From positions 565,854 to 629,853 of the forward strand of contig JAKMXF010000066.1 in assembly GCA_024704765.1 (NCBI GenBank): 64,000 nucleotides of DNA, in the 5' to 3' direction. Shown in pieces: positions 16,258 to 43,700 of the stretch. The DNA comes from Oopsacas minuta. Taxonomy: Eukaryota; Animalia; Porifera. Made by a program: the position numbers and the translations under genes. The notes below the pieces were generated by a model that did not search any database, was not told the DNA's origin, and worked only from the letters and a program-made list of their open reading frames with translations. Each line of letters begins with the position of its first letter. Positions within the stretch are counted from its first letter, which is position 1.

Positions 16258-16536
16258 TAACTCACTAATTATATTTATTCGTTTAAACTATACTCACACG
16301 TCTAATATCGATTAAATTATTACACTTAGTAAAGCAACGGAATCCAGTTTAAATAGTAAAATTGGGAGTTCTCCCAGCTGAAGTGTTTGTTTTTAACCTA
16401 CGAAAAATGACAATTCTTCCTAGAAATTTCGCTATTACACCGCTTTTCTACCCGACCTAATCTATTCACTTACCGAACATTTGAATTACGAATTCAAGCT
16501 TTATTATGTGTAATTAATGCAGTCTATAATGTGTGT

Positions 16537-18506
16537 TCATTTATATAACCATCCACATTTCTCAAAGAATTCATCAAGCCTAATTGCCTGTTCAATCCCG
16601 AGATCATTAGCTACTAACTCTCTCCCTCTTTCTCTACTCCTTTCACTGGGGCCTTCTCTATTATAAGCCAAGAAATACTTCAGTTTAGCTGTATTATATT
16701 GGCTACTCGATATCCCTATATCTGTACATAATTCCTTTTCTATGCTGGATAACAATTCATAGTTATATCTCATACGGAGTATATCTGAGCTATTTGGTTG
16801 TGATAAGCCTTTCATAGGTGACTTATGTGATTTTCCTGAGTTTGATTTATCTGTTTTTATTTGCTCTCTGAGTTTTTTTGCGTTTTCAAACTCTTTCACT
16901 TCGCTCAATTGAGTTAACCCATTTTTCCTGTACTTTGATAGTTCTCTGATTTTTTGTTTGAGTGTCCTCTCTTTCACGAAGGAATGGAGATAGTTATCAT
17001 ACTGTTCTGGGTTCAATCTACGTATAACACAATAATAAACCCATACCAACCAACCCCTTTTTCAAATTTCCCTGAATTTCACGTTTTACCACCGAAAATA
17101 TCCAGAAATATTGCAAAAAACAAACATTTTATATTTTTCCCTTAAGTATGTAAACGGATGCCATTTGAATAATATTTGTGTTTCCTAACCTTGAAATAAC
17201 CTTGTGTTGCTGTCTAAAGTCTTTTTCCTCTTGTAGATGTCTCTTCTTAGAACTAATATATACATGCTGTCCAGTAATAAGCTTATTCTTATGTACTATT
17301 CGTTTCCTCTCATTTCTTTCCTTCACTTTGTTCATGTATATCTCTACCTGGGCTAGTTTTACACTCTTCTCCAGGCTATCATCTTCTGAAGTGAATTCTA
17401 CACCTGCGATTAAATCTTCCGCTTCGTTAGAGAATTCTGTCTCGAACTCATCTCTGTATTGTGAGTAGTTCATAGCAAGCTCCTGGTCAGGTCTAAGTGT
17501 GTTTACAGGAGGAACAGGGTTTGTTTTGAGGAGGTCTTCCCAGCTTGTCTCTCCTGAGAGAGCCTGACCTTCATGTTGTGCTGTGTATTGTGAGATTATT
17601 CCTGTTAGAAATTCTATTATTAAATTTTGTATAACGAGGTTTGTGAAATAAGTGTACAGGAACCTCCACATACGGAGCCTGTGGAAGCGGAGTGAAAATA
17701 TATAGAATGAATTCCTAGTCCCATACAAATGAACCTCCACAAAAGGGGTAGCATTTTTCTGCGTCCCTGCACCCCGTTTGTGAGGGTTACACTGTACTTA
17801 CCATCAGGTTGTAGATATACACTATTGAAGTGTTGTTCAACTTCCTTACTACTCCTGTTATCACCTACATGCTGTGCTATTTCATTCCAATTACCCAATC
17901 CATAGTACTCTATAGCTTCTAGCAGTAACTCTTCTTCTACAGCTAGCCACTGATCTCCTTCGTCTGATTATAAGGAATTATTCAATTTAGAAAGACATAT
18001 TTGCTATTTTGGTGTTTATGGTTTGAGCTCCTATGAGAAATTCTCAATTTATAGGCTCTATTGATTTACACAAAAGCTATAAGTTACAATGGAGATGAGT
18101 TTTACAATCAACTGCCGTTATATCAAATACGGATATATCGAATACCCGCTTCAATTGTATGCTAAACCTTCAAAGTTACGTATACTTTGTCGGTTATATC
18201 GAACTCTGCTTATATGAATTATCGCTGTCCCTTGAGCTTCGATATAACTGGAGTTGAATGTATGTTTAAAACAGTTTACTTACCTAACAACTTGAAGTGG
18301 TTCTTGTCCACAACTTTATAGCTGTGTGTTCTGGAGTGCTCACTAGTCTCCTCTCCCTTTGCTACACACTGTAGACACACTTCACAATCTGAGCACTCAT
18401 TACATTCTAATCTAACTCGTAATGTTAAATCTTTACCACACATAGCACAGTGTCTCCTTTCAGCATGTGCTGATAACCTTCCTAAATATGGCATTAGAAA
18501 CTCCAT
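16537..18506 (-). CDS. TADA2B: Transcriptional adaptor 2 (ZZ-SANT-SWIRM-like), about 4 exons; TADA2B-like
   Basis: ZZ finger CAMC...CNEC..C.VCLQC...H..H; SANT WLAVEEELLLEAIEYYGLGNWNEIAQHV; RDEFETEFSNEAEDLI. The A versus B paralog assignment is uncertain. Confidence 0.8.
17657..17794. mobile_element. MITE family B copy in a TADA2 intron
   Basis: TA|CAGGAACCTCCAC...GAGGGTTACACTG|TA with the conserved GCATTTT..GCGTCCCTG core. Confidence 0.75.
18105..18260. mobile_element. MITE family A copy in a TADA2 intron
   Basis: TA|CAATCAACTGCCGTTATATC...GATATAACTGGAGTTGAATG|TA. Confidence 0.75.
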
Positions 18507-20508: not shown

Positions 20509-20766
20509 CATTGTAACCTCTACACATGGGGTCTGAAAAATGCTCTCTCTCCGTTACAGGGGTATATCCAAGGATTCCTGGGCCGGAACTTTTTTGAAGG
20601 GTAACCTATTGAACCTGTACAAATTTGAGTCTCACGGTCGGCTCTTTTGGGTACCCGCTAAGCACCTAGATTAATAAACTCCTTTCCCCATTTCTGCTAA
20701 TTTCCAATTCGCTCAATTTGTTTTTCACTCCGTTTCAGAAGTTCCCCGTTTGTAGAGGATACGCTG
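20509..20766. mobile_element. Longer MITE family B copy, intergenic
   Basis: TA|CATTGTAACCTCTACA...TTTGTAGAGGATACGCTG|TA. Confidence 0.6.
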
Positions 20767-21779: not shown

Positions 21780-22871
21780 ATGAGTGAAATATCTTTGAAA
21801 GTTATCTCAGGTAATCAACATGTAGCTAATTGAGAATTATCATACATTCCAATTGCCAAATTTGCCGCATAGCACACTCAAGTATTTCATTAATATTTAT
21901 AGATGGGATTCTGTATCTTAATAAGATCTCGGAACATCTGGACGATGATTTATTACTGGAACATGTAAAAATTGAACAATCCTTTCAAGAATTGTTTCAT
22001 CTCATGGAAAGGTCTGAATCTGGGGTAAGTACACACAGATTATTTATTTAAATATTTATAATTAATATTTTGTAATTTTAGATATCAAAAGTGAATAAAT
22101 CAAGTTCTTCTAAACAAAAGTTATGCAAAAGGTAACCACTTAATTACTATCATTTGAGATATAATCATTAATATTTATGTATTTAGACCCAAACAATTGC
22201 CTTTGGAGAAACAAACTAACAAATCGTTAGAACACAAAAATATGAATTTAGAGAGTAGCACATCTCATAAAGAACTGAATCAAATCTATGAAATATCAAT
22301 CCTAATAAATGACCAGGATATAGGACAAAAATACTGCACTGTTAACGGTCAACATATTTTTATAAGCAAAGAAGACAGACAATATCAGTATATGCTATCA
22401 CTAATCGACTATGACACCCCACGAGCGAATGGCAGTGCTATACACTTAACCTCACCTAACACGTCACTAGAACTTACCTTCAAAACAGAACTAACTTGTC
22501 AACAATTCTACTCGCTTATAGACTCAGTTCATTACAATCAATTATCTATTCAATCATTAGACATACATAATTCTTCTGAAGAATCATTCTATGGATATAG
22601 CAGTGTTGACAACTATTCTACTGTTAGGAAGATGAATAGAAGTAACACGCTTGATCAATTACAAACTGAATTGAAATCTTTTCAATACGATTACCCTCGA
22701 TTTGGCGGAAAAAGTGAAAATAGGAATTTGGATTTGCCTTCCCGAAGAAATCTTCAGCTTAACGCGTTAAACTTTAGACGGAAGAACTCAGGAGTTGTTT
22801 ATGATGAAATTTACAGTGTTTTAACAACATTCACTAGCCCTATACATGAGTACGCGACCATTCCTCATTAA
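21780..22871 (+). CDS. PH-domain adaptor family, copy 4 (divergent, 4 exons), Tyr-motif-rich tail
   Basis: Spliced MSEISLKVIS|DGILYLNKISEHLDDDLLLEHVKIEQSFQELFHL aligns with the family N-terminal motif; PH-like segment in ORF 22197-22871; tail carries YDEI, YSVL, YATI. Confidence 0.55.
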
Positions 22872-23297: not shown

Positions 23298-23996
23298 CTA
23301 TGCAGAATATCCAATACACTTTCTAGTCGCTGGTACTTGAAAATCTGAATCAGATAGTAAAACAGAGTCTCGAGTTTGTTCAGATATTTCTAAAATAGCC
23401 GATTCATTATCTTTGAAATTATGTGAGATATCTTTAGCAATTTGATTGAATAAAAATAGTATATTGAGTCCTTTAGAAGCTGAGCATTCAAAATATTCCA
23501 TTCTATTCTTTAATGCGAATGAATTTGCATCAAATTGTGTTATAACTCTCTCCTCAAAAAGATCCAATTTATTCCCTACTAGCATAAACAAGGTATCATT
23601 GCTAACACTAGCTTTAGCCAATTCAATCCATAAAGGAATTGCTTCAAAACTTTGGATATTTGTAATATCATATACAACTAGCACTGCATGTGAATTGCGT
23701 AGATAATTGCCTGTTATTGATCGAAACCTTTCGTGACCGCCTGTATCCCAAATCTGTAATCGCATATGATAAGAAGTTCCACGTACTTCGTGTTTAATTA
23801 AATCCATGCCAATCGTAGAGTATAAGTTCTCGCTAGTTACACTGCCACCGCCCGTATGCAGACATCTAAGAATCATAGATTTACCAACATTACTATTACC
23901 CAATATGCAAACCTTGTATTCAGGGAGAGTTCGCATTTTATACATTTCTCTCATAGGAACACTTAAACTGTTTAAACTTGAATATTCTGCCATTTC
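23298..23996 (-). CDS. Atypical Rab-like small GTPase with His at the catalytic Gln position
   Basis: G1 GNSNVGKS, STIGMD, WDTGGHERF, NKLD, ECSAS. Start placed near MAEYSS (approximate); the track ORF extends to 24041. Confidence 0.82.
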   Translation of the reverse strand, partial: EMAEYSSLNSLSVPMREMYKMRTLPEYKVCILGNSNVGKSMILRCLHTGGGSVTSENLYSTIGMDLIKHEVRGTSYHMRLQIWDTGGHERFRSITGNYLRNSHAVLVVYDITNIQSFEAIPLWIELAKASVSNDTLFMLVGNKLDLFEERVITQFDANSFALKNRMEYFECSASKGLNILFLFNQIAKDISHNFKDNESAILEISEQTRDSVLLSDSDFQVPATRKCIGYSA

Positions 23997-24159
23997 TATA
24001 TTTCTAATAAACAAAGGTTTGGGAAATAATGTCATTATCAAGTTTAATTCTATAAAATATAGTATTACAATCTTGAATATGCCTATACATACAATTTGAT
24101 GTCATTAGCCAAACACATGTATTTTTGCTACAAATTTATATTCAATTTTCCATTTATGG

Positions 24160-25422
24160 TTACACATTACAACATTTCCTATTTGAAGATGTTGAATTGT
24201 TATCAAGAGGTGTTATGTCGGAAATTGTAAGTTTAATAATGTTATTTTCGTCTATACTGCTAATGGACTGTGGATGTTCTCGTTTGATGAGAGACGGGAA
24301 AGCAATTAACATTCTCCTCGCTATACACTCGAATACCTGTAGTATATTGTATCCAGTTAGCCCGGAGCAGTCCATGTATTCTATCCCGTTCTTTTCAGCG
24401 AATTCCGTTGCTGTTTCCTCCTTGACAACTCGGCGCATTTCTAGATCCCCCTTATTGCCTACGAGCATATAAACAGCTTCAGTTTTTGCATACTGTCTAC
24501 CAGTAGCCAACCAATTGCTTACGGCAGTGAAACTAGCTTCATCTGTCATATCATATACCAGGAGTACCACGTGAGCATTACGCAACCAGCAAGATGCAAA
24601 TGACTTGAATCTCTCTTGTCCAGCTGTATCCCAAACATCAAGGATTAATTCTTGTTCACCAATCTTTAAATATCGTTTAAACTGATCAATCTCTGTCGTA
24701 GGTTGTATTGTATGTGGTGACGTCAGAGCTATTCCACCTCCCCTATAGCTACAATAGATACTAGTCTTACCTACCCCTGCGTTGCCGATAATGCTGACTT
24801 TAAAATGAGGGAGAGATTTGTAACGAGTGTGTTTATAATCAACTGATTGGTCTCCTACAGTAGGATTACGACATGATCCATAAGATGCTTTCTTTCCAGG
24901 TTTCTCTTTCTTCGCCTGCACCATCTTTTGAGGTTGTTTAGGTAGGCTAGCTGTTTTTGGAAGTTTGGAAGTTTCTTCCATACTGACTGACAGTGTTTGG
25001 GATAGGAATTCGTGAACCTTTTTCTGAATATCTTTAACATCCATTGATGAAATTAAATGATCGAATTCAGGGAGAACATTCCTTATTTCATTGAGATGAG
25101 GTGCGCATTCGGTTTTCAAATTCTCACTCACTTTCTCACCGATCCAATGCACTAAAAACGTTTTGTACATCCCACTAACCATCATATCCTCTAATTTTAC
25201 AAATGCATACATTATTAGATCATCTTCTAAAGCTAGAAGGAGTTCTATCCATACGTCACCCTCCTGGATTACGTTAATAGGAAGCAAGGATAGTTTATTG
25301 GCGGCCTGGTTGATTGCTACCTGGTAGCCAATTAACGCCCAGCTTCCACTTCGGTCTGATTGTAGCACACGAGTAGTTGCAGTCTTAATATTTCGCATAT
25401 AAGACAAAGTATCTAGATTCAT
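24160..25422 (-). CDS. ADF-H (drebrin/Abp1-type)-Rab GTPase fusion, copy 1, 420 aa
   Basis: N-terminal SWALIGY...MYAFVKL...KTFLVHWIGEKV...CAPHLNEI follows the Abp1/drebrin pattern. C-terminal GNAGVGKT, WDTAGQERF, NKGD; ends CCNV. Confidence 0.85.
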   Translation of the reverse strand: MNLDTLSYMRNIKTATTRVLQSDRSGSWALIGYQVAINQAANKLSLLPINVIQEGDVWIELLLALEDDLIMYAFVKLEDMMVSGMYKTFLVHWIGEKVSENLKTECAPHLNEIRNVLPEFDHLISSMDVKDIQKKVHEFLSQTLSVSMEETSKLPKTASLPKQPQKMVQAKKEKPGKKASYGSCRNPTVGDQSVDYKHTRYKSLPHFKVSIIGNAGVGKTSIYCSYRGGGIALTSPHTIQPTTEIDQFKRYLKIGEQELILDVWDTAGQERFKSFASCWLRNAHVVLLVYDMTDEASFTAVSNWLATGRQYAKTEAVYMLVGNKGDLEMRRVVKEETATEFAEKNGIEYMDCSGLTGYNILQVFECIARRMLIAFPSLIKREHPQSISSIDENNIIKLTISDITPLDNNSTSSNRKCCNV

Positions 25423-25685
25423 TCTTCTGTATTACTACTGTATCTGTATACACTGGCTTATATGTAGTTATAGTGGATGGAGCTTTATTATTGAGTAATA
25501 CCATCTCAGCATTGAGTACATATATAGAATGATAAGAATTAATACAGACAATACTATGTATAGTCAATTCCTCACTATATCTAAATTTTGTATCCTTATA
25601 AACAGGATAGTTACAACAAATATGCTCTACATACTATCACACATACATTATAATGAGAATAAATCAAAGAGTTCGAATGAATAGA

Positions 25686-26942
25686 TTATAGTTTACTGCA
25701 TTGCTGGCAACCATGTCTCTTCCTGTTTGTAATAAGTTCTCGCTCTGCTGTCGTGCTATCAGTTAGCTTTATTATTCTCTCAGAGAATGCGTTATTAGAT
25801 GTGAATATATCATGATAGACAAATACAACTCTTCTAGTTATACTCTCGAATAGTTTTAAGATATTCAATCCTGTTAACCCGGAGCATTCCATAAACACCA
25901 TATCGTGTTGTTTAGCGAACTTTTCTGCTGTAGATTCTTGTACAACTCTACGATGGACTAGATCTGCTTTGTTACCGACTAAGTAGAATATTGCTCTCTC
26001 ATTCGCATACGCTTTAGCTGTTTCCATTAGTTTGGGTATTTCTTTGTAACTATCTTCATCTGTTATATCATATACACAGATTACAACTTTAGCGTTCCTT
26101 GTCCAAACAGGTGCAAATGCTACATACCTTTCTTGCCCTGCTGTATCCCAGATCTCTAAGGTGAAATTATGATTGTCTAATGAAACTTTCTTACTCATGC
26201 AATCGGCGGATATTGTACTAGTTATTAGTTGAGGATTCGATAGAGCAGATCCTCCCTCGTTATAGCTTAGGTAAATGAAGGTTTTACCTACCCCTATACT
26301 GCCGATAATTGTTATCTTGAATTTTGGCTGCGCCACCGGCTCTAAGTAGGAAGTGAATGTGCTTGATTCGGATAGCATTTCGGGTTTATTTTTACGTTGG
26401 GGGTGTCTTTGTTGAGTTGAAGACCTGTACTTCCTCCCTCCTTCTAGAGATTGAGTCTTACTTCCATGAAATGAGATTGTTGTGTCCCTTCGAGGTCGTA
26501 ATGGACGAGCTATAGCACAAATGGGCTGAACGCGAGTGGAGTAGCCGTGTACCTGAGCCATAATATCTAATGGGTCCATCGTACTTATTAATAGGTCATA
26601 GCAGGGAATAAGATTCCTGATTTCGTTCAAATGAGGCATGCAAGACTCCTTTTTGTTTTCATCCACGTCTTTTCCAACCCAGTGTATCAGAAATATTTTC
26701 ATGTCGCCTTTAGCTTCAAAATCAAGCTTAGCATATCCGTACTGTATCTTCTCATCGTCAAATAAATCTAGGAGATCAATCCAAACTGTTCCTTCCTTTT
26801 TCACGTCTAATGTCATTATGTTACACTTCCTGACTCTATCAGAGTACCCGAATAACACCCAAGTTCCGCTTATCTCTGAGGTTTTAACATTGTTGACTGC
26901 TTGCAGAATCTCATCACTGTAAGAGAATGTATCCAGATTCAT
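25686..26942 (-). CDS. ADF-H-Rab fusion, copy 2, 418 aa
   Basis: TWVLFGY...YGYAKL...FLIHWVGKDV; GSIGVGKT, WDTAGQERY, NKAD; ends CQQCSKL. Confidence 0.85.
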   Translation of the reverse strand: MNLDTFSYSDEILQAVNNVKTSEISGTWVLFGYSDRVRKCNIMTLDVKKEGTVWIDLLDLFDDEKIQYGYAKLDFEAKGDMKIFLIHWVGKDVDENKKESCMPHLNEIRNLIPCYDLLISTMDPLDIMAQVHGYSTRVQPICAIARPLRPRRDTTISFHGSKTQSLEGGRKYRSSTQQRHPQRKNKPEMLSESSTFTSYLEPVAQPKFKITIIGSIGVGKTFIYLSYNEGGSALSNPQLITSTISADCMSKKVSLDNHNFTLEIWDTAGQERYVAFAPVWTRNAKVVICVYDITDEDSYKEIPKLMETAKAYANERAIFYLVGNKADLVHRRVVQESTAEKFAKQHDMVFMECSGLTGLNILKLFESITRRVVFVYHDIFTSNNAFSERIIKLTDSTTAERELITNRKRHGCQQCSKL

Positions 26943-27361
26943 TTTGTTCGTATCTTTAATATATTTTAAGAGATATATTTACCCGAGTATATCTGATAAG
27001 TTTTGAAGATTTAATCGCTGTTATTTTGATTGTTTGAACACTTTTAGCTTTGGATGTTTTTTGCCTTGAATTTATAGCCACGCAAACAATGTGCTATGGT
27101 TATGTAATGTGATATTTCAGGTGTGGCTAATTATCCTACATGCTTAGGACCCTAGTATTACAAGTAATTACGTGTTATGATATCATATTGAGTACATATA
27201 TAGAATGATAAGAATTAATACAGACAATACTATGTATAGTCAATTCCCCACTATATCTAAATTTTGTATCCTTATAAACAGGATGGTTACAACAAATATG
27301 CTCTACATACTATCACACATACATTATAATGAGAATAAATCAAAGAGTTCGAATGAATAGA

Positions 27362-28612
27362 TTATAGTTTACTGCATTGCTGGCAACCATGTCTCTTCCT
27401 GTTTGTAATAAGTTCTCGCTCTGCTGTCGTGCTATCAGTTAGCTTTATTATTCTCTCAGAGAATGCGTTATTAGATGTGAATATATCATGATAGACAAAT
27501 ACAACTCTTCTAGTTATACTCTCGAATAGTTTTAAGATATTCAATCCTGTTAACCCGGAGCATTCCATAAACACCATATCGTGTTGTTTAGCAAACTTTT
27601 CTGCAGTAGATTCTTGTACAACTCTACGATGGACTAGATCTGCTTTGTTACCGACTAAGTAGAATATTGCTCTCTCATCCGCATACGCTTTAGCTGTTTC
27701 CATTAGTTTGGGTATTTCTTTGTAACTATCTTCATCTGTTATATCATATACACAGATTACAACTTTAGCGTTCCTTGTCCAAAAAAATGCTACATCCATC
27801 TCTTGCCCAGCTGTATCCCAGATCTCTAATGTGAATTGATGATCTCCTAATCTAACATTCCTATTCAAGCAATCCATTTGTATCGTAGTTGATCTTCTAT
27901 TAGGGCTCGGTGGAGCAGATCCTCCTGCGTTATAGCTCAGATATATTATCGTTTTTCCTACACCTAGGCTCCCGATAAGGGCTACCTTAAATTTCGGCTG
28001 CTCCACCGGCTCTAAGTAGGAAGTGAATTTGCTTGATTCGGATACCATTTCAGGTTTATTTTTATGTTTGGGGTTTTTTTGTAGAGAAGAATATTTGTAC
28101 TTCATCCTTCCTTCTAGAGATTGATTCCTGCTTTCACGATATGAGATTGATGAGTCCCTTCGAGGTCGTAATGGACGAGCTGAAGCACAAATGGACTGAA
28201 CGCGAGCGAAGTAGCCGTGTACCTGAGCTATAATATTTATTGGGTCCATCGTACTTATTAATAGGTCATAGCAGGGAATAAGATTCCTGATTTCGTTCAA
28301 ATGAGGCATGTAAGACTCCTTTTCGTTTTCGTCCACGTCTTTTCCAACCCAGTGTATCAGAAATAATTTGAAATCGCCTTTCACTGTGAAGTTTAGTTTA
28401 GCATATCCGTACTGTATCTTCTCATCGTCAAATAAATCTACGAGATCAATCCAAACTGTTCCTTCCTTTTTCACGTCTAATGTCATTATGTTAGACTTCC
28501 TGACTCTATCAGAGTACCCGAATAACACCCAAGTTCCGCTTATCTCTGAGGTTTTAACATTGTTGACTGCTTGCAGAATCTTATCACTGTAAGATAATGT
28601 ATCCAGATTCAT
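27362..28612 (-). CDS. ADF-H-Rab fusion, copy 3, 416 aa, altered switch regions
   Basis: Tandem duplicate of copy 2 (ATG offset 1670 bp); switch II reads WDTAGQEMDVAFFW, 2 aa shorter; ends CQQCSKL. Confidence 0.83.
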   Translation of the reverse strand: MNLDTLSYSDKILQAVNNVKTSEISGTWVLFGYSDRVRKSNIMTLDVKKEGTVWIDLVDLFDDEKIQYGYAKLNFTVKGDFKLFLIHWVGKDVDENEKESYMPHLNEIRNLIPCYDLLISTMDPINIIAQVHGYFARVQSICASARPLRPRRDSSISYRESRNQSLEGRMKYKYSSLQKNPKHKNKPEMVSESSKFTSYLEPVEQPKFKVALIGSLGVGKTIIYLSYNAGGSAPPSPNRRSTTIQMDCLNRNVRLGDHQFTLEIWDTAGQEMDVAFFWTRNAKVVICVYDITDEDSYKEIPKLMETAKAYADERAIFYLVGNKADLVHRRVVQESTAEKFAKQHDMVFMECSGLTGLNILKLFESITRRVVFVYHDIFTSNNAFSERIIKLTDSTTAERELITNRKRHGCQQCSKL

Positions 28613-29040
28613 TTTGTTCGTATCTTTAATATATTTTAAGAGATATATTTACCCGAGTATATCTGATAAGTTTTGAAGATTTAATCGCTGTTATTTTGAT
28701 TGTTTGAACACTTTTAGCTTTGGATGTTTTTTGCCTTGAATTTATAGCCACGCAAACAATGTGCTATGGTTATGTAATGTGATATTTCAGGTGTGGCTAA
28801 TTATCCTACATGCTTAGGACCCTAGTATTACAAGTAATTACGTGTTTGTAGTATCATAAAATAATTGTTTACTCTTCTGTATATGAATAACACAGAATTT
28901 ATATTTTCTTATGAGTAATGAGTTTTAAGGGTCTCGGAATTCCTATAAGCGTATAATTAATGGGAATTATACAAGATATAAACACCATTAAAATACACAT
29001 AGAACAATACAATTACATTTTGACAATTCAGATCATTAAG

Positions 29041-30371
29041 TTATTTATTACATTGCTGACAACCTCCATGTCTTTTCTTGCTCCGCATTGATACATCGTA
29101 TCTTGTATAATCACTCAGTTTTATCGTACCTCCTGAAATACTCCTAGACATTGTAGGAGAACTCGTGAAAATATCTTGATAGACAAATACAACTCTTCTA
29201 GTTATGTCCTCGAATAGTTTTAAGATGTTTAATCCTGTAAGCCCGGAGCATTCCATAAACACCATATCGTGTTGTTTAGCGAACTTTTCTGCTGTAGATT
29301 CTTGTACAACTCTACGATGGACTAGATCTGCTTTGTTACCGACTAAGTAGAATATTGCTCTCTCATCTGCATACTCTTTAGCTGTGTGAATACTTTTAGG
29401 AAGATCATTATAACTGTCCTCATCTGTTATATCGTATACACAGATTACAACTCTAGCGTTCCTTGTCCAAACAGGCGCAAATGCTTTATACCTTTCTTGT
29501 CCTGCTGAATCCCAGATCTCTAAGGTGAAATTATGATTGTCTAATGAAACTTTCTTACTCATGCAATCGGCGTATATTGTATTAGTTACTAGTTGAGGAT
29601 TCGATAGAGCAGATCCTCCCTCGTTATAGCTTAAGTAAATGAAGGTTTTACCTACCCCCACAGTGCCGATAATTGCTATCTTGAATTTTATCCGTTTGAG
29701 CGTTACGTAAGATACAGAAACAGGACTGTCGACAGTCTCTTCTGGTTCTGGAGGTTCAAACGCGGAGTCCGGTGTCTCATTTACTGGATTTAAATTTATC
29801 CTATTGGTGTATGTTCTCACGAAACTGCTTTGTTCTTTATTATAGACTCTTGTGCTACTCGCTCGTGTGCGAAACAAAGAACTGTTAAACTTCGATATTT
29901 CCATATTACTCTCTGATCGTGATGGACGAGTTTCAACGCAGATTGACTGAGAGCGAGAAAGGAAGCTATGTACTTGAAACTGTACATCTAAAGGCTCCAT
30001 TGAGTTAACTAGTAAGTCATAACAGGTTATCATATTCCTGATTTCGTTCAGATGTGGCATACAAAACAACTTTTCATTTTCACCAACATCCTTTCCAACC
30101 CAGTGTATCAGAAATATTTTCATGTCGCCTTTAGCTTCAAAATCAAGCTTAGCATATCCGTACTGTATCTTCTGATCATCAAATGCCAGCAATAGATCCT
30201 TCCATATTGTACCTTCCTTAATAACGTTTACGCTCATTAAGTTGAGTTTCTTGGCCCCTTCATCTCCTTCAGTGTATCCTATTAGCATCCAGCTACCTCC
30301 TACAGGTGATGACTGTACGCGATTGATTCCTGCCTTTATGTCCACTATTATGAGAGAGTATCCAGATTCAT
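29041..30371 (-). CDS. ADF-H-Rab fusion, copy 4; the ATG at 30371 is cut off from the main ORF by a 1-nt deletion (possible pseudogene or sequence error)
   Basis: ATG AAT CTG GAT ACT CTC TCA TAA: the family start MNLDTLS meets a stop at codon 8. The long ORF resumes one base out of frame at GTG 30345. Confidence 0.72.
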
Positions 30372-30744: not shown

Positions 30745-32058
30745 TTAATAGAATATTTGTAAAATAAATCCTAATAAACTTGTGATCGCTTGTATCAAGA
30801 ACACGATTTGACTTCCGAAGTGTTCTTCTAATAGCGGGGATATTTGCATATCTAGATAGGAGAAACTGTAAGCAGCAAATGTAGCAATTCCTGCAGATAC
30901 TCTATTATAGTGAGGATGTAATATTTCACCGATCAACCACCATCCTATTGAACCCCAGCCAAAAGTATAAGTGAATGCATACATAGCCACGAATATCAAA
31001 GGAGCAAACTCAAGTATCTGACATATGGTAGTTTCCTGTGATATATGAGTATTACTACAATGAAACTTGTCAGTAGAGAGGTAGATTGTTAGACTCAACA
31101 GTCCGTTAGACGAAATCTGGAAAATAGTTGTTACAAGAAGTAGTTTCTTCCAACTTATTCTCTGTATAACCCAGAGGAATAGAATGCCCCCAATTAGCAG
31201 TGGGACAGCAAATAATAATCCAGCAATCTTAGGATTTATGCTGACTGATGATTCCAACGTATGAGCAGAATATCCTAACAAATACTCATGTCCTGATGAT
31301 GCCTTAAATATTTGTATAGTACAACATACTAATAGAGGCCTCAGTACTGGCCATACAAAATAGCTGGATATCTTCTGAGAAAAACTTGCATTAACATTTT
31401 CACTTATCTCTTCATTTATAGAGTTATCTTGAGATGGATTATAGAAATAATATTCTCTTGCTTGATTAGCTCTATCATCCCAACCTTTGTTTCTTAACCA
31501 TCTAGGTGTTTCCGGTAGAAATACGAAGTTTAACGTAGTGAATGCAATCATTAGCATATAGAGAACAGCTAGCCATCGATAACTTATCCAGAGACCTAAA
31601 CTATAGCTTATTAAAACTCCAATTCTTAAAGAGATTGCTAAAATAGCACCACATAGTTTCTTAACAGAGTCTGGAGCTATTTCTGAATTGTATACAATAG
31701 CCCAGGATATAGACATACCTGTATAGAAGCCGATTAACAATCTCCCTATAGTCATAGACACACTGTCATTGGCAATAATCAACAATATTGTCCCTAATGT
31801 TCCTAGCTGTGACGTCACAATCAGACTAGTTTTTATACCCAGCCATTCACTAATTAGCCCTCCTATAGTAGAACTGAATGTACCTCCTAAATAATCAGCA
31901 GAAGCGAACAAGGAATAACTGTCTTGTGAGAATTTACCGGTCTCTAGGAGAGAATCTTCTATTGGAGATGTGTAAGAATCAATATAGCCTGTCGACATAA
32001 TACATAGCGATGTTATCATGCATGCGTGTAATACTCTAATTGATTTCTTAACAGACAT
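30745..32058 (-). CDS. MFS sugar-porter (GLUT6/8, Tret1-like) transporter, copy A
   Basis: Multiple TM segments; sugar-porter motifs IGRLLIG, YNSEIAP, LPETPRWL, GWGSIGW..GEI. Confidence 0.85.
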   Translation of the reverse strand: MSVKKSIRVLHACMITSLCIMSTGYIDSYTSPIEDSLLETGKFSQDSYSLFASADYLGGTFSSTIGGLISEWLGIKTSLIVTSQLGTLGTILLIIANDSVSMTIGRLLIGFYTGMSISWAIVYNSEIAPDSVKKLCGAILAISLRIGVLISYSLGLWISYRWLAVLYMLMIAFTTLNFVFLPETPRWLRNKGWDDRANQAREYYFYNPSQDNSINEEISENVNASFSQKISSYFVWPVLRPLLVCCTIQIFKASSGHEYLLGYSAHTLESSVSINPKIAGLLFAVPLLIGGILFLWVIQRISWKKLLLVTTIFQISSNGLLSLTIYLSTDKFHCSNTHISQETTICQILEFAPLIFVAMYAFTYTFGWGSIGWWLIGEILHPHYNRVSAGIATFAAYSFSYLDMQISPLLEEHFGSQIVFLIQAITSLLGFILQIFY

Positions 32059-32271: not shown

Positions 32272-33624
32272 ATGTGTTATTCTAATAATATGTCTCTAAT
32301 CAAATCCATTCGTGTCCTCCATGTATGCATCATTACATCCATGATGATAGTCGCTACAGGAATCATGGATGGTTACACATCCCCGATAGAAGACTCTCTC
32401 CTGGAGAATGGAATGTTTTCTATTGACAAATATTCTACATTTGTGTCTGCTTTTGTCTTAGGAGGTATGTTCAGTTCCACTATAGGAGGATTAATTAGTG
32501 AATGGCTGGGTATAAAAACTAGTTTGATATTTACGTCACAGCTAGCAACATTTGGGGCAATATTGTTGGTTATTGGCAATGACAGTGTGTCTATGACTAT
32601 AGGAAGATTGCTAGTAGGGTTTTATGCTGGAATGTCTATGTCATGGGCTATTGTATACAATTCAGAAATAGCAACAGATTCGGTTAAGAAACTGTATGGT
32701 GCTATTTTAGCAATCTCTTTAAGAATTGGAGCTATAATAAGCTATAGTTTAGGTCTCTGGATAAGTTATCGATGGCTAGCTGTTCTCTATATGCTAATGA
32801 TTGTATTCATTACGTTAAACTTCGTATTTCTACCGGAAACACCTAGATGGTTAAGAAACAAAGGTTGGGATGATAGAGCTAATCAAGCAAGAGAATATTT
32901 CTATGACTTATATCAGGAAAACACGTCTGATGAGGTGAATACGAAAATGTCCAGTGATTCTAGTTTGGAGAATGTTAATGTGAGTTTTTCTCAGAAGATA
33001 TCCAGCTATTTTGTATGGCCAGTACTGAGGCCTCTATTAGTATGTTGTACTATACAAATATTTAAGGCATCATCAGGACAGGAGTATTTGTTACCATATT
33101 CTGCTCATACGTTAGAGTCATCAATCAGTTTTAATCCTAAGATTGCTGGATTATTATTTGCTGTACCAGAGCTAATTGGGGGCATTCTATTCCTCTGGGT
33201 TATACAGAGAATAAGTTGGAAGAAACTACTTCTTGTAACAACTATTTTCCAGATTTCGTCTAACGGACTGTTGAGTCTAACAATCTACCTCTCTACTGAC
33301 AAGTTTCATTGTAGTAATACTCATATATCACAGGAAACTACCATATGTCAGATACTTGAGTTTGCTCCTTTGATATTCGTGGCTATGTATGCATTCACTT
33401 ATACTTTTGGCTGGGGTTCAATAGGATGGTGGCTGATGGGTGAAATACTACATCCTCACTATAATAGAGTCTCTGCAGGAATTGTTACTTTAATCTTATT
33501 TTCCATTGCTTATCTCAATACACAAATTTGTCCAATTGTAGAAGAACACTTCGGGAGCTATACAGTATTTTTCATAAATGCTATAGTTTGTTTGATTGGC
33601 TTTATTTTACAAAGATTCTATTAA
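32272..33624 (+). CDS. MFS sugar-porter transporter, copy B (head-to-head inverted paralog)
   Basis: Same motifs as copy A, with long identical central stretches. Start could be 32272 or 32290. Confidence 0.85.
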   Translation: MCYSNNMSLIKSIRVLHVCIITSMMIVATGIMDGYTSPIEDSLLENGMFSIDKYSTFVSAFVLGGMFSSTIGGLISEWLGIKTSLIFTSQLATFGAILLVIGNDSVSMTIGRLLVGFYAGMSMSWAIVYNSEIATDSVKKLYGAILAISLRIGAIISYSLGLWISYRWLAVLYMLMIVFITLNFVFLPETPRWLRNKGWDDRANQAREYFYDLYQENTSDEVNTKMSSDSSLENVNVSFSQKISSYFVWPVLRPLLVCCTIQIFKASSGQEYLLPYSAHTLESSISFNPKIAGLLFAVPELIGGILFLWVIQRISWKKLLLVTTIFQISSNGLLSLTIYLSTDKFHCSNTHISQETTICQILEFAPLIFVAMYAFTYTFGWGSIGWWLMGEILHPHYNRVSAGIVTLILFSIAYLNTQICPIVEEHFGSYTVFFINAIVCLIGFILQRFY

Positions 33625-37711: not shown

Positions 37712-40700
37712 ATGCAGACACAAGATCAAGGCAATTTAGGTTGGTTCAAAAGCTACAAAAAATGCTTGATACATTCACTAAAACAAGCGAACACTGAATA
37801 CAATGAAAATTCCCTTTTCATCACTGACGGATACAATGCATTGCATATCGGTGCAAATCTGGGAGAAATTAATATTCTAATTTTCGCGGTCAAATGCTTC
37901 ATAACTCAACCTGGAATCACAAAGTTAGAAAGTGTGAAATCATATGTTGACACTTTTGATGAAAATGGACTTACTCCGTTGCACCGGGCTTCCATGGAAG
38001 GGAACTGGAAATGTGCGAAATTACTCGTCCGATACGGAGCAGACATGCAACTAACTTCTAACGGTAAATACAACGCGTTAGATTTCGCGAGAAGACATCG
38101 CAATCCTAATAATAAGGAAACAAGCAATGGATTGGTTAAATTATCACAGGAACTTGAACGTAACGGTTTTGTAATGGATCAGTTAGAAGCTCAACTGGAA
38201 ATTATTTGTTCCCAATCTATCAATACTCATGACGCCATTCAGGAAATATCAAATCTTATCATTAACAAACATGTGGATATAAATTTCACCGATCCAATTG
38301 GAGACACTCCCCTTCATTTGGCTTGTCTAGCTAATAACGAATACCTCATGGTTAACCTACTATTTTTCAAGGCTAATACAACTTGTATTCGTAACGAGAA
38401 AAGCCGCACTTTACTACATTATGCGTGTAAGCATATGTTAAGCATCAGATTCTTCCTGGCTAACAAGTTCCCATATTTGTTGATACTACGAGATAGTAAG
38501 GGATACTTCCCAATGCATTTATCTGCTAAGAAAGGTGATTTGAAGTTCTTAACTTTCATATTTGACCGCAATGCTTATCCTCTCTCAAAAACCAGTAATG
38601 ATACTGACTCCGATGATGATACTATTACTGATAATCTTGAGCCACTAACTGATGTCGAAGATCGCGACATCCGTATGAGGTATGTCAATAAGCGCCAACA
38701 AAGACGATCAGACCCTGGAGTGACCAAATTGGAGTTACAAAAAGGATGCCTGAATAGTAGAGACAGTTTGGAAAAAGGCAAACATATATTAAAATCTAAA
38801 TTACGTTTAAAAGGTAAGAGTGTTATACCGACAGAAAGTGTAAAACCGATGTTTGATGAATTTATAAGCACTTATAAAGATCCTGAACTTAAAGATGCTG
38901 ATGAATTATCCCAGGACTTATCTGATATCAGTTATTGCATCAAACGGTTATCCCTGACTGATAAAAGTATTGATGAACGATCTATGTTACATTTCGCTGC
39001 AGCAAAAGGGCATTTAGAGATAGTTGAGTTTTTAATCGAGGTTTGTGACATGCATTCTAATTTCTCGAAGAAATGCTGTACTGTGCATGATTTGGTCAAC
39101 AGGACAACTGAATTTGGTTTATCACCGTTAACCGAAGCTTTGAAAAACAAACACATTGAGATAGCAGAGTTTCTACTTGGAAATAACGCGAGCATAAATT
39201 CCACTACTTGTCGTGTACTAGCAGGATTCCTGGAAGAAAATGATCCCGAACAAACTTTGAAATTTCTACACAAGTTGTCCAAGGAAAATACGGAAGATTT
39301 CTTTAAGGTATTTACAATTGAATATACAACTGATACTCCTTTCATTTCATCTCTACTCCATGCTCTTATGAAGGAAGAATCTTATCAACTATCTACATTT
39401 CTTCTCACGAATAAAGTGAAAGTAAATATGGAAGCTCTCATCATGGCATTTACACTCTGTATAGTAGAATGCCGAGTAGAACATTTGCAATTATTCATTG
39501 AGAATTTCCCAGAAATCCAATACAATGAAGAACTACTAACATTGGAAAAGTTCCTCAATCAAACTGAGTTAAGGATTAACTTTATTTACGAAGCAGTGAA
39601 AGTCAAGGAAATCCGTTTACTAAATCTCCTCCTTCAGTCTGGGGCTGATCCAACCGTCTACAAACCTAATTCCTTAGAAAAGAATTTACTCTACATGGCT
39701 TATAAACACAGTTACCTTGACAACGGAGAGTTATTTCTAACCCTGTTAGAGTACGGGGTAACTGTCAACTTGCAAGAGGCAATCGAGGGTGTAGGAAATT
39801 TTGCAAATTCCTATTGTATCATCTGGTTGCTAGTGCTTCACGTGATTGAAACAAATCTACAACCTTTGTCGATAAAACGCAGAACATCTTCACTGGAAAT
39901 TTTCAATGATCGTTCGCTAACATACAAAGGGTTTGTGTTATGGGATGATTTTGGTTTTCAGTTCGTTGAACTTAAGTGGATCTCTGCTTGTGCGTATATT
40001 GTTGATCACCTCGATGCAATAGTATCTGATTATCGTATTGCTAATCATACAAGTTTCCCTAAAGCTACTGATTCCGGATTCTACAAATTTGTAGTTCACC
40101 ATTTGAAAAGTTCGGATACCCTCACATCCATTCCAACTTCATTCCTGAAAGAATCGAATATTTGCAAACTATCATTCCAAAACAACAAACTTAACGGTGT
40201 CCCTATTGAAATATTCGATCTTCCTCACTTAAAAGAACTGAACTTATCTGACAATGAGATTACTTATATCCCAGAGAGGAAGAGCGAATTCTCTCTAGAA
40301 TGGAGTGATGAAGAGAAAATGCAGAGTAAATATGGTTGTAAAAGTTTGAAATTACTTGACGTATCAAACAATAAATTACAATCATTGCCGGCGGATTTAT
40401 TTTACTTACCCAAAATCACAGAAGTAGAGGCAAGTAATAATAAGATATCATTTCTCCCTCATGAACTGTGGTTAGCTGAGAGCTTGACAACGCTTAAGCT
40501 CAATAGGAATTTGTTACGTCACCTAACGAAATCTGAAATTGATTCTCTTGAGAGTGGATTTTGTTCATCTTTGAATGCAAGAGCTACTTTCTTCATTAGA
40601 AAGAGGGTCGAAACAATGCCGAGTTTCCACATCCCTATAACTATTCAAGAATCCAATACTGAAAAATCCAAAAATCCTTTGGATTTCTTTCCACCGACTG

Positions 40701-43700
40701 TGATTGAAGATACTACAACTAATAATAGTTCTGATCTATCTTCAACAAATACGGATTCTGGGACCGCGGGAACACAGTCTCAAAGTATATCTGACAGAGA
40801 TCGGGGCCAATCAGTGAGACACCCCTTACCTATCCCAAACTGGACTGACTACTCGTCTCTACAGAATATAGAACTTTCTTTCAATAAATTTTCTATATTT
40901 CCACACGATTTAGCTTGCATAGCTCCTAAACTACAAAGACTTGATATGCGAAATAATAATCTCAAGAAATTGAATATTCTGCTTGATTTACCGAAGTCCT
41001 TACACCTTATTTTATTTGATAATAATCAAATAACAACTTTATTAGAACATCTGGAGCCGATATCATGCTGTAGTCCATGTTGTTATGCGTTACCAGATCG
41101 TGATAAGGATCATAAACCTAGGTGGTGTTCACATCATCAGGTAGCTTCATTCCCTCTCTTACAAACTATCTCTTTTAATAACAATAAACTCACTGAATTC
41201 CCGATTGAACAGTTGAAGGAAAACAAATCCAAGAATTCTTTCGTGCTTTATCCGTCCATTCTTGCCCTGTCAATTTCTGAAAATAATTTTAAAGAGGTAC
41301 CACAAGGTATTTCAGTGCTGACGTCAATAACTTCTCTCAACCTGGCTTTCAATAAAAATATTACAAAAATTCCACTCGCACTGAAGTCTTTAACAAACTT
41401 ATTTTATATTAATTTATCTGGTCTGGAGATTGATGGAATTCCTGATTATATTCTAAGAGGGCAAGCCCCTCGTTTGATTAGTCATCTAGCTAGTCAATCA
41501 CAGGACAGGAGAACACACCGTACACTCAAGCTATTCATTATGGGAGATGAAGGGAAGGGAAAAACTACTCTACTCAGTCATTTAGGGAAAGGTAAAATTT
41601 TGTTATTTGGTCCAGAATGTATTTCAAGAAATTTGAAGCCGAAACACGCATCAGTACCTTATAAACCTACCATTGGGGTGGAAACGAGTATTTGGGAACT
41701 GAATAAGCCCAGGAGATGGGATCACGGGACTACAAATAGCAGTCCGATTCAATTCATATGCTGGGATTTCGCTGGGAAAGAAGAATATTTCCCTGCTTAC
41801 CAAGGGTTCATGTGTCAACGAGCTATCTACATTGTCGTCTGGGATATAACTGATGGGTATAACGGAGTTAAGGGGCTTGAAAAATGGCTGCAATCTATCG
41901 AACAGAATGTACCGAAGAGTTCATGCATTATTGTAGGCACATTTTTGAATAAAATAAAAATGAAAAAACCGACAATTAAAGATATGACAGAACACATTAT
42001 TGGGATGTTTAAGAAGAATACCTATCTTTATCCAAAGATACTTTCTGTACAATTTTTGGATAGTTTTGATGAAGATAAGGTCTTTCAATTGAGAGAACTT
42101 ATCTATATTGAAGCTACAAAACTGTCGACTAAGGAGAAATCAAACTCAATTGCAGTGCCAATTTTAGAGAAACTTGTCCCACTCAACCAAATACGATTCC
42201 TCCAATATGTAACGTTTATCAAGGATCAGTCGGAATTGCAGAATAAAATCCGTATTTTGACAGGTTTCCAGTTCCGCGGACTTGTTGAGAAGGTTTGGCA
42301 AGGTGAGTTCATGGAAAATTACGAATTTCAGAATGCAGTTAAGTTTCTACATAGCACTGGCTATCTAATGCATTTTGAGGATGATCCTGAATTAATGGAT
42401 CAATACGTTATCAATATGGAATGGCTATGTCAGAAATTCGTAGCAGTTCTACACACACAAATACCACTTAGTGAAGATCAACGGACAATGAAGTGTGGAG
42501 TCGTACAGAAAGAGAAAGTATACGAAATCTTAAAAAAATTAGAAGTGCATAGGAATGATTTTTCAAAGTTTATTTCATTCATGAAGAAGTTTGAGATTTT
42601 GATCGAGTTATCCGAAAAATTCTTTATATTTCCATCTCTTCTTCCAAAGAACAAATCCGAGGCTACTCAATTAACTCTCAAATTTAATTTATCCACGAAT
42701 ACTTCCCAGTTGCCTGATTGCATTTCATGTCCACAAATTGACAACGACACTGCCAATTCCCTCTCAACAGTGCCATCAACTCTTTTGCTAAACATCCCAA
42801 CATTTGGTATAGGCCCTGCTAAACCGAGTAAAGCAGTTAGGAAAGATTCAATGAAGATAGCATTCTCACAATGGATCCGTCTCTATCTAACTCCTCTCAT
42901 ACCGAGTGATTTCTGGGCCCGTTTATTATCCCGGGTGATAGCTGACCAGAGTTATCTTGCTACACTTCAGAATTACCTCCACATATTTCTTAAAATTTAT
43001 CAATTAAATGAATTGGACCAAGTAGTAGCTGAGATTACGAATATATTACAATGGAAGGTTTGGAATAATGGGCTGGGGTTGTACGTGGGTAATGATGAGA
43101 TACTTCAGGTTAGTTATCTGCTACTTCCTAGTTTACACTTTACAGACTTAATGCTAGTGGATAACGACCCAGAGGAACATCCTCCGATTAAAGGGGAGTT
43201 TTCTGGAGGTGTCCATGTGTTGGTAAGGGAATGGGAGGGAATTAAAGTTGACTCGAACAAAATTGCTAAACCTTTCTTACCCAGTGAAAACCATGAAATG
43301 ATGGGAGATCCCAGTATATCGCTACAACTAGCAACTTGGCTTCTACAACGCTCTGCTTACCATGTTGAAGAAGTATTCGATGAATGGCAAGAGAAACTCT
43401 ACACTGTACGTCGTAGCATGTTCCAATCAGTTAGCCAACGTCTATCATGCTACATACCTTGTCCCAAATGTTATCACTCACTTTCCAAGCATATCGACCC
43501 TCTAAAGAAGAAATCTATGAGCCCTACTATACTAGAAGAGATCGATAATATAGAAATGAATACTATTCATTACATAGGACAAAATGCAGAAGAGAAGGAA
43601 GTAATAATAGAATTCTATGTATATAGTATAGTCTATCTATGCGGCCTAGCTAGAGATGGGAAGAAGTTGTTCTGTCCTGTACACGGGAAGATAGGCATGT

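Follow-up and report, generated by a model that had tools for sequence, protein, structure and literature searches.

Positions 24160-30371 of a 64,000-nucleotide stretch of DNA from the sponge Oopsacas minuta (GenBank assembly GCA_024704765.1, contig JAKMXF010000066.1; the whole stretch is called the window below) hold a tandem array of four unspliced minus-strand genes, each of which encodes an ADF-H domain, a linker, a Rab-type G domain and a cysteine tail. The array proteins join two known domains in a new way and are multi-domain Rabs. We give about an even chance (0.5) to the reading that they belong to a real, expressed glass-sponge family, built of an ADF-H domain, a flexible linker and a divergent Rab, whose membrane-bound form would tether membrane to filamentous actin (F-actin). 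The Rab half would be geranylgeranylated and, like other Rabs, would cycle on and off membranes under the control of GTP/GDP state and GDI. The ADF-H half would bind the side of actin filaments, and the membrane-bound protein would then hold a membrane or vesicle straight to F-actin, needing neither a separate effector nor a myosin adaptor. A predicted prenyl anchor together with predicted side-binding to F-actin would thus make a nucleotide-switchable tether between membrane and actin.

Two known domains in one transcribed reading frame

The original prediction, which was made from the letters of the window, had described four minus-strand open reading frames (ORFs) of this architecture. All four were found again free of stops, including the string MYAFVKL...KTFLVHWIGEKVSENLKTECAPHL quoted for copy 1, and each contains matches to both Pfam Cofilin_ADF (PF00241) and Pfam Ras. 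The Cofilin_ADF scores of copies 1–4 (26.8, 35.1, 37.1 and 26.8 bits) lie above the curated cut-off of 22.4 bits, and the Ras scores range from 127 to 145 bits in 4/4 copies. The linker between the two domains is 60–80 residues long in every copy and is predicted to be disordered. A full-length AlphaFold2 (AF2) model likewise has two folded domains, separated by a disordered linker (residues 142–201) and followed by a disordered tail (residues 381–420).

The N-terminal domain had been assigned to the drebrin/Abp1/coactosin class of ADF-H domains, and the Pfam match, a profile search and the predicted fold all agree with this. A profile built from 21 family N-termini and searched against sequences in the PDB ranked drebrin first (5y1z, E = 2e-12), ahead of HIP-55/mAbp1 (1x67, 6e-9), yeast Abp1 (1hqz, 8e-5) and coactosin-like proteins (about 5e-3), with cofilin reaching merely E = 1.5. 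The mAbp1 string given in the original prediction agrees with the alignment to 1x67. The AF2 model of the domain (predicted local distance difference test score 78, predicted template-modelling score, pTM, 0.78) was compared with the PDB by Foldseek, and all 50 matches listed were ADF-H domains (64 with E <= 0.001), the best being those of drebrin, Abp1, coactosin and HIP-55 at template-modelling (TM) scores of 0.7–0.85. On this combination of sequence and model evidence we place the domain in the drebrin/Abp1/coactosin class. The Pfam scan of the four ORFs found no SH3 domain and no acidic Arp2/3 motif, and the C-terminal half is a Ras/Rab domain instead.

The C-terminal half is Rab-like with a cysteine tail, as predicted, by its Pfam Ras match, its solved relatives and its tail motifs. 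The best solved relatives of the G domain are Rab30, Rab5, Rab26, Ypt1 and Rab1 (about 1e-30 to 1e-27), and 60/60 of the solved-structure matches listed are Rab or Ypt proteins. The family alignment contains G1 as GxxxVGKT, G3 as WDTAGQE and G4 as NKxD; these motifs and the catalytic Gln are intact in copies 1, 2 and 4. The catalytic Gln is kept in most family members and replaced by H or M in a few homologues, and switch I has a near-invariant Thr and an invariant Asp. RabF2-like (LEIW/LDVW), RabF3-like (RF/YxxF), RabF4-like (W[TL]RNA) and RabF5 (VYDIT) segments can be recognised in the alignment. Two C-terminal Cys residues are near-invariant across the family; the tails of one clade, clade A, end in CCxx, a typical Rab motif, and the CSKL end of copies 2 and 3 can also be read as a CAAX box.

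Evidence for transcription comes from four public runs of one sample (X1–X4), whose contigs were placed on the window region. We treat X4 as RNA and X1–X3 as DNA, because GT..AG joints (21808>21901, 22023>22081 and 22129>22185, in a neighbouring spliced gene) and uneven depth, from 0 to about 6000, are seen in X4 only, whereas X1–X3 are flat at about 90–270. For copy 1, a single X4 contig of 1503 nt runs without gap or splice through about 149 nt of 5' untranslated region, the entire coding sequence and about 78 nt of 3' untranslated region. In copy 4, the RNA contig at 29635-30120 runs from the last part of the ADF-H domain across the linker and into the G domain as far as the P-loop, and two copy 3 contigs (27754-28130 and 28101-28270) bridge the ADF-H domain, linker and G domain. 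RNA contigs also lie on copy 2, and c0, a Rab-only paralogue next to copy 1, has a separate RNA contig at 23304-23977. The fusion is also encoded, in complete ORFs, by two Trinity transcripts (P0006 and P0270) of the glass sponge Vazella pourtalesii. The copy 1, 3 and 4 contigs and the Vazella transcripts bear out the prediction of one transcript and one ORF for both halves, and expression of the two domains as separate products was not seen in them. That the halves are separate adjacent genes joined by a gene-model artefact is ruled out by the RNA contigs, by the Vazella transcripts and by about 50 homologues in which the ORF stays open through a non-conserved linker. At position 24971, in the linker of copy 1, the X4 RNA contig reads C and the assembly and DNA contigs read G, which is probably a heterozygous allele and not RNA editing.

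What the ADF-H domain may bind

The case for actin binding includes the most conserved stretch of the N-terminal domain, K.FLIHW.G..V.EN.K...PHLNEIRN, which aligns with drebrin KYVLINWVGEDVPDARKCACASHVAKVAE. In ADF-H domains a strand and a long helix form the actin-contacting face. The conserved segment HW.G..V.EN.K...PHLNEIRN presumably sits on this strand and helix; its alignment to drebrin and mAbp1 was computed, and its placement on the face is taken from established knowledge. Within the same class, the ADF-H domain of Abp1 localises to F-actin (PMC3760615).

Several observations weigh against a tether of the kind proposed, and they concern both halves of the protein as well as the biology of the host. 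In the ADF-H half, PHLNEIRN is invariant and family-specific, drebrin and mAbp1 having ASHVxxxAxF at this place, and the difference could mark another partner. In the G domain, CSGLTG is invariant where Rabs carry SAK (G5 = SGL), about four residues, rich in Gly, are inserted ahead of switch I in a region of low AF2 confidence, and RabF1 (IGVDF) is degenerate. The tails of clade B, CxxC(x0-3), are atypical among Rab prenylation motifs. A clear parent among the canonical Rab subfamilies was not found: Rab30, Rab5, Rab26 and Rab1 score similarly and the G domains form a clade of their own in a tree with a small reference set, and assignment to a canonical subfamily was rejected. Organelle streaming in glass-sponge syncytia is microtubule-based, and an actin link meets no obvious need there. 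Finally, an ADF-H domain of the drebrin class is not a guaranteed actin binder, because the isolated drebrin domain is diffuse in cells and dispensable for the binding of drebrin to F-actin (PMC3760615).

These points lead to the first alternative, in which the fusion is real and its ADF-H domain is not actin-binding, serving as a protein-interaction or autoregulatory module of an ordinary membrane-traffic Rab. We consider this somewhat unlikely, though it has several facts on its side. The ADF-H domain of drebrin, the top match in both sequence and fold, alone does not bind F-actin (PMC3760615); it binds ZMYND8 and the C-terminal BB region of drebrin itself (PMC3760615; title of PDB 5y1z), and the invariant PHLNEIRN helix of the family differs from drebrin and Abp1 alike. 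However, the ADF-H domains of Abp1 and coactosin, which are nearly equal matches, do bind F-actin, and the conserved patch maps to the face by which ADF-H domains typically contact actin. In the full-length AF2 model, too, with its disordered linker and a pTM of 0.46, the two domains are not predicted to dock on each other in a fixed way.

A second alternative accepts actin as the partner and changes the task. The Rab-anchored ADF-H domain would stabilise filaments or compete with cofilin, in the manner of coactosin and Abp1, and would build or protect compartment-specific actin coats when GTP-bound. Membership of the drebrin/Abp1/coactosin class is consistent with such a regulator of actin dynamics, and the many paralogues could mark different compartments, but Pfam finds neither an Arp2/3-activating acidic motif nor an SH3 domain, and by sequence alone the regulator is indistinguishable from simple tethering. 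We regard it as improbable.

The tether reading can be drawn more specifically, and in this form we hold it only tentatively, below even odds. The array proteins would be the first Rabs with a built-in filament-binding domain, would descend from a single glass-sponge origin followed by the rise of compartment-specific paralogues, and would act as a direct tether free of effectors and motors. Possible roles are the positioning of organelles in the syncytium, or the holding of silica-deposition membranes on actin templates, which are reportedly present in hexactinellid spicules.

Family range, history and the state of the copies

The range of the family was examined with a word-indexed search of 5.8 billion proteins and with a full-length profile that HMMER compared exhaustively with 1.84 billion representatives, followed by local domain scans. 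The former returned about 48 proteins with both PF00241 and PF00071, all of them from ENA assemblies, the window's contig or the EukProt set of Vazella pourtalesii. The latter added two divergent clades, P0127/P0269 and P0201/P0270 (Vazella). P0127, a member of clade C, scores 30.2 bits against Pfam Cofilin_ADF, and P0201/P0270 was matched by hhalign at a probability of 96.7%. No protein with an ADF-H domain and a Rab domain was found outside the family among the 1.84 billion representatives, where the other two-stretch matches scanned were tandem Rab-Rab proteins. A region search with the ADF-H part returned family members alone, and the ESM Atlas, among its clusters of at least 50 members, held no cluster combining ADF and Ras. 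One candidate member, P0252 (run SRR2064712), was rejected: its N-terminal match is weak (hhalign 73%), its N-terminus has no relatives and its G domain falls outside the clade. In all, the family numbers about 55 proteins, which fall into three or four clades; it has many paralogues and appears only in hexactinellid-type data. This agrees with the prediction of a lineage-specific, expanded family, which by its sequence distribution appears to be specific to glass sponges (Hexactinellida), a group reported to have compact genomes and many single-exon genes (PMC10282587).

In the family tree, clade A, with copy 1, stands apart from clade B. Within the latter, B1 contains copy 4 and Vazella P0006, and B2, which is greatly expanded in Vazella-like assemblies, contains copies 2 and 3; orthologues of both A and B occur in several assemblies. 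A midpoint-rooted tree of the G domains, with Rab1, 5, 6, 11, 13 and 30 as the small reference set, unites all fusion clades, c0 and the c0 orthologue at the related locus L003 (19469-20173) in one clade (96/96) apart from the reference Rabs, with c0 as sister to fusion clade C (99/95). The G domain of c0 is 36% identical to that of copy 1 and shares its Gly-rich insertion ahead of switch I. It reads DTGGHE in place of DTAGQE, which removes the catalytic Gln, and its tail carries a single Cys. The position of c0 within the fusion clade makes a loss of its ADF-H domain probable, and the simplest history is one ancient fusion followed by this loss.

Gene order is conserved at related loci. At L003 the order is a type B fusion gene, a sugar transporter gene (Pfam Sugar_tr), a type A fusion gene and a Rab-only gene, which we read as the order of the window, where the sugar transporters are followed by the clade B copies 4, 3 and 2, then by copy 1 of clade A and by c0. 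The related array L001 has at least seven copies and lies, as in the window, beside peptidase M16 and AhpC-TSA_2 genes and an LRRK-type kinase gene. It includes Rab-only pieces of 216, 107 and 209 aa (16474-18472), of which the 216-aa and 209-aa pieces group in clade B and look like truncated copies. At a third locus, L002, two copies lie about 9 kb from each other.

Comparison of the old paralogues shows purifying selection on both domains, with ratios of non-synonymous to synonymous divergence (dN/dS) of 0.21–0.25 for the ADF-H domain and 0.19–0.45 for the G domain, beside 0.44–1.7 for the linker. Judged from their sequences, copies 2 and 3 arose by recent duplication (unit of about 1.68 kb, flanks 99% identical) and copies 1 (clade A) and 4 (clade B1) are old paralogues. 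Copies 2 and 4 are 92% identical over 525 nt of the G domain at a synonymous divergence near 1 in the ADF-H domain, which argues for gene conversion.

Copies 3 and 4 show defects of different kinds. The original prediction had let the array end at an ATG at 30371, and this did not hold for the assembly as it stands: the conserved ATG (30369-30371) is out of frame with the copy 4 ORF and opens a frame that reads MNLDTLS and then TAA, one base being absent after 30348. The extra base is present in the short-read DNA contigs of X2 and X3, at full local depth, and also at the end of the X4 RNA contig; the long-read-like run X1 alone matches the assembly. With this base the frame reads MNLDTLSYIVDIK... 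and the intact copy 4 ORF would have 443 aa, its repaired start MNLDTLSYIVDIKAG... agreeing with MNLDTLSYITDIKGA of the orthologues. Since X2, X3 and X4 all carry the missing base, an assembly or long-read error is the simplest account of the break. A second variant of copy 4, an allele with 4 bp deleted at about 29615, lies in a GAGG GAGG repeat just past the P-loop and accounts for about 30–40% of the short-read DNA depth in X2 and X3; one copy 4 allele therefore appears frameshifted. The idea that copy 4 is a pseudogene by virtue of its broken start is largely rejected by the short-read DNA and RNA, though the deletion allele exists. In copy 3, switch II reads QEMDVAF--FWTRN against QERYVAFAPVWTRN, two residues short, and the reads agree with the assembly without differences. 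The dN/dS between copies 2 and 3 is 0.58 overall, with relaxed constraint in copy 3, and from their sequences copy 3 and one copy 4 allele seem degenerate. To treat the whole array as an annotation or assembly artefact, or as decaying pseudogenes without function, is very improbable and largely refuted for copies 1 and 2: such a view can draw on these defects of copies 3 and 4 and on the Rab-only fragments in the L001 array, but it is opposed by the continuous ORFs and conserved starts (MNLDTLSY) and ends of the roughly 50 homologues, by RNA support, by purifying selection on both domains, by syntenic orthologues in several genomes and by the absence of the copy 4 start frameshift from short reads and RNA.

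Genomic setting, novelty and relation to known systems

The coordinates of the array are collected in Table 1; the intergenic gaps within it measure 118–428 nt.

Table 1. Array genes, the parts of copy 1 and the adjoining Rab-only gene, in window coordinates
Feature	Position	Strand	Description
Copy 1 (clade A)	24160-25422	-	ORF 420 aa; Pfam Cofilin_ADF 26.8 bits, Ras 143.7 bits
Copy 1, ADF-H domain (aa 1-141)	25000-25422	-	AF2 domain and disorder map
Copy 1, disordered linker (aa 142-204)	24811-24999	-	AF2 domain and disorder map
Copy 1, Rab G domain (aa 205-380)	24283-24810	-	AF2 domain and disorder map
Copy 1, hypervariable tail	24160-24282	-	C-terminal end CCNV
Copy 1, mRNA	24082-25571	-	Single X4 contig
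Copy 2 (clade B2)	25686-26942	-	ORF 418 aa; Pfam Ras 209-372; tail CQQCSKL
Copy 3 (clade B2)	27362-28612	-	ORF 416 aa; tail CQQCSKL; 2-residue switch II deletion
Copy 4 (clade B1)	29041-30371; assembly ORF 29041-30345	-	434 aa from GTG; tail CQQCNK
c0, Rab-only paralogue	23298-24041	-	118 nt downstream of copy 1

The array is adjoined by a divergent pair of closely similar single-exon sugar transporter genes of the major facilitator superfamily (30745-32058, minus strand, and 32272-33624, plus strand; Pfam Sugar_tr). About 7 kb from the array, a single-exon plus-strand ORF of 2845 aa (37712-46249) encodes an LRRK-type ROCO kinase with Ank, LRR, Roc, COR-A, kinase and LRRK2 beta-propeller domains. 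LRRK2 is a kinase of Rab switch II, and the position that we take to correspond to its target Thr in Rab8/10 is Ser in clade A (QERFKSFAS) and Ala in clade B. Any link between this kinase and the array is speculation. On the other side of the array, the spliced plus-strand gene has three very short GT..AG introns (92, 57 and 55 nt, within 21808-22185) that are backed by an RNA contig and lie upstream of an ORF at 22197-22871. At about 20706-20752, DNA contigs of all runs pile up on a stretch of some 30–45 nt (depth up to about 6000) and continue into unrelated sequence; the stretch is probably a short dispersed repeat.

The original prediction knew of no described ADF-H–Rab fusion, and our reading of the literature came to the same result. 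Full-text searches (ADF-H with Rab; PF00241 with PF00071) retrieved no description of an ADF-H–Rab protein, and the "Rab" text matches in PMC10772126 were to the word "rabbit". Two hexactinellid genome papers, one of them PMC10282587, mention none of Rab, GTPase, cofilin or ADF, and in a review of large Rabs (PMC8303950) actin and ADF are both absent. The proteins are deposited in public collections, which may list the architecture automatically.

Rabs normally reach the cytoskeleton via separate effectors and motors. The natural fusion of a Rab to an ADF-H domain is a "Rosetta-stone" case. If the tether reading is true, it would show that the switch protein itself can couple membrane to filament, and would offer a compact natural tool, in which nucleotide state turns the tethering of membrane to actin on and off. 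The family would also represent a lineage-specific innovation of glass sponges, animals whose syncytial tissue and actin-associated silica skeleton have so far found little molecular explanation, and its paralogues could serve as compartment markers. Should the ADF-H domain not bind actin, the family would still be a new class of multi-domain Rab, with some other partner on a strikingly invariant PHLNEIRN helix.

Among known proteins, coactosin is one point of comparison. It consists of one ADF-H domain, attaches laterally to F-actin and does not depolymerise it, and the array domain matches its fold at TM 0.78–0.85. Unlike the array proteins, coactosin is free-standing at about 140 aa, and its sequence likeness to the family (E about 5e-3) is weaker than that of drebrin and Abp1. 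Drebrin, mAbp1/HIP-55 and yeast Abp1 share with the family an N-terminal ADF-H domain, the best match in sequence and fold, followed by a long, charged and poorly ordered region. Compared with these proteins, those of the array lack an SH3 domain, an acidic Arp2/3 motif and any helical or coiled-coil region for actin binding, and they carry at the C-terminus a Rab GTPase with a predicted lipid anchor.

In proposed function, by comparison with established knowledge, a parallel to the coupling itself lies in the Rab27a–melanophilin–myosin Va and Rab11–FIP2–myosin Vb systems, in which a Rab-marked membrane is coupled to actin according to the nucleotide state of the Rab. Those links need two further proteins and include a motor, whereas the array protein would do this in one polypeptide and as a static tether, not for transport.

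In architecture, the large Rabs (Rab44, Rab45/RASEF and Rab46/CRACR2A) resemble the array proteins in placing an N-terminal module and a long linker before a C-terminal Rab domain (prenylatable in the large Rabs, putatively so here), and clusters of EFCAB4A/4B and Rab44 were among the nearest multi-domain models in a structure search of the ESM Atlas. Their EF-hands and coiled coil, neither of which Pfam finds here, are replaced by the ADF-H domain. The G domain of the array proteins is not orthologous to theirs, and the family is seen only in hexactinellid-type data. CRACR2A is a large Rab with a cytoskeleton link of its own, being a dynein–dynactin adaptor (PMC8303950). CRACR2A/Rab46 is the nearest functional analogue, and the array protein, which presumably binds actin filaments directly and not a microtubule motor, would be its actin counterpart.

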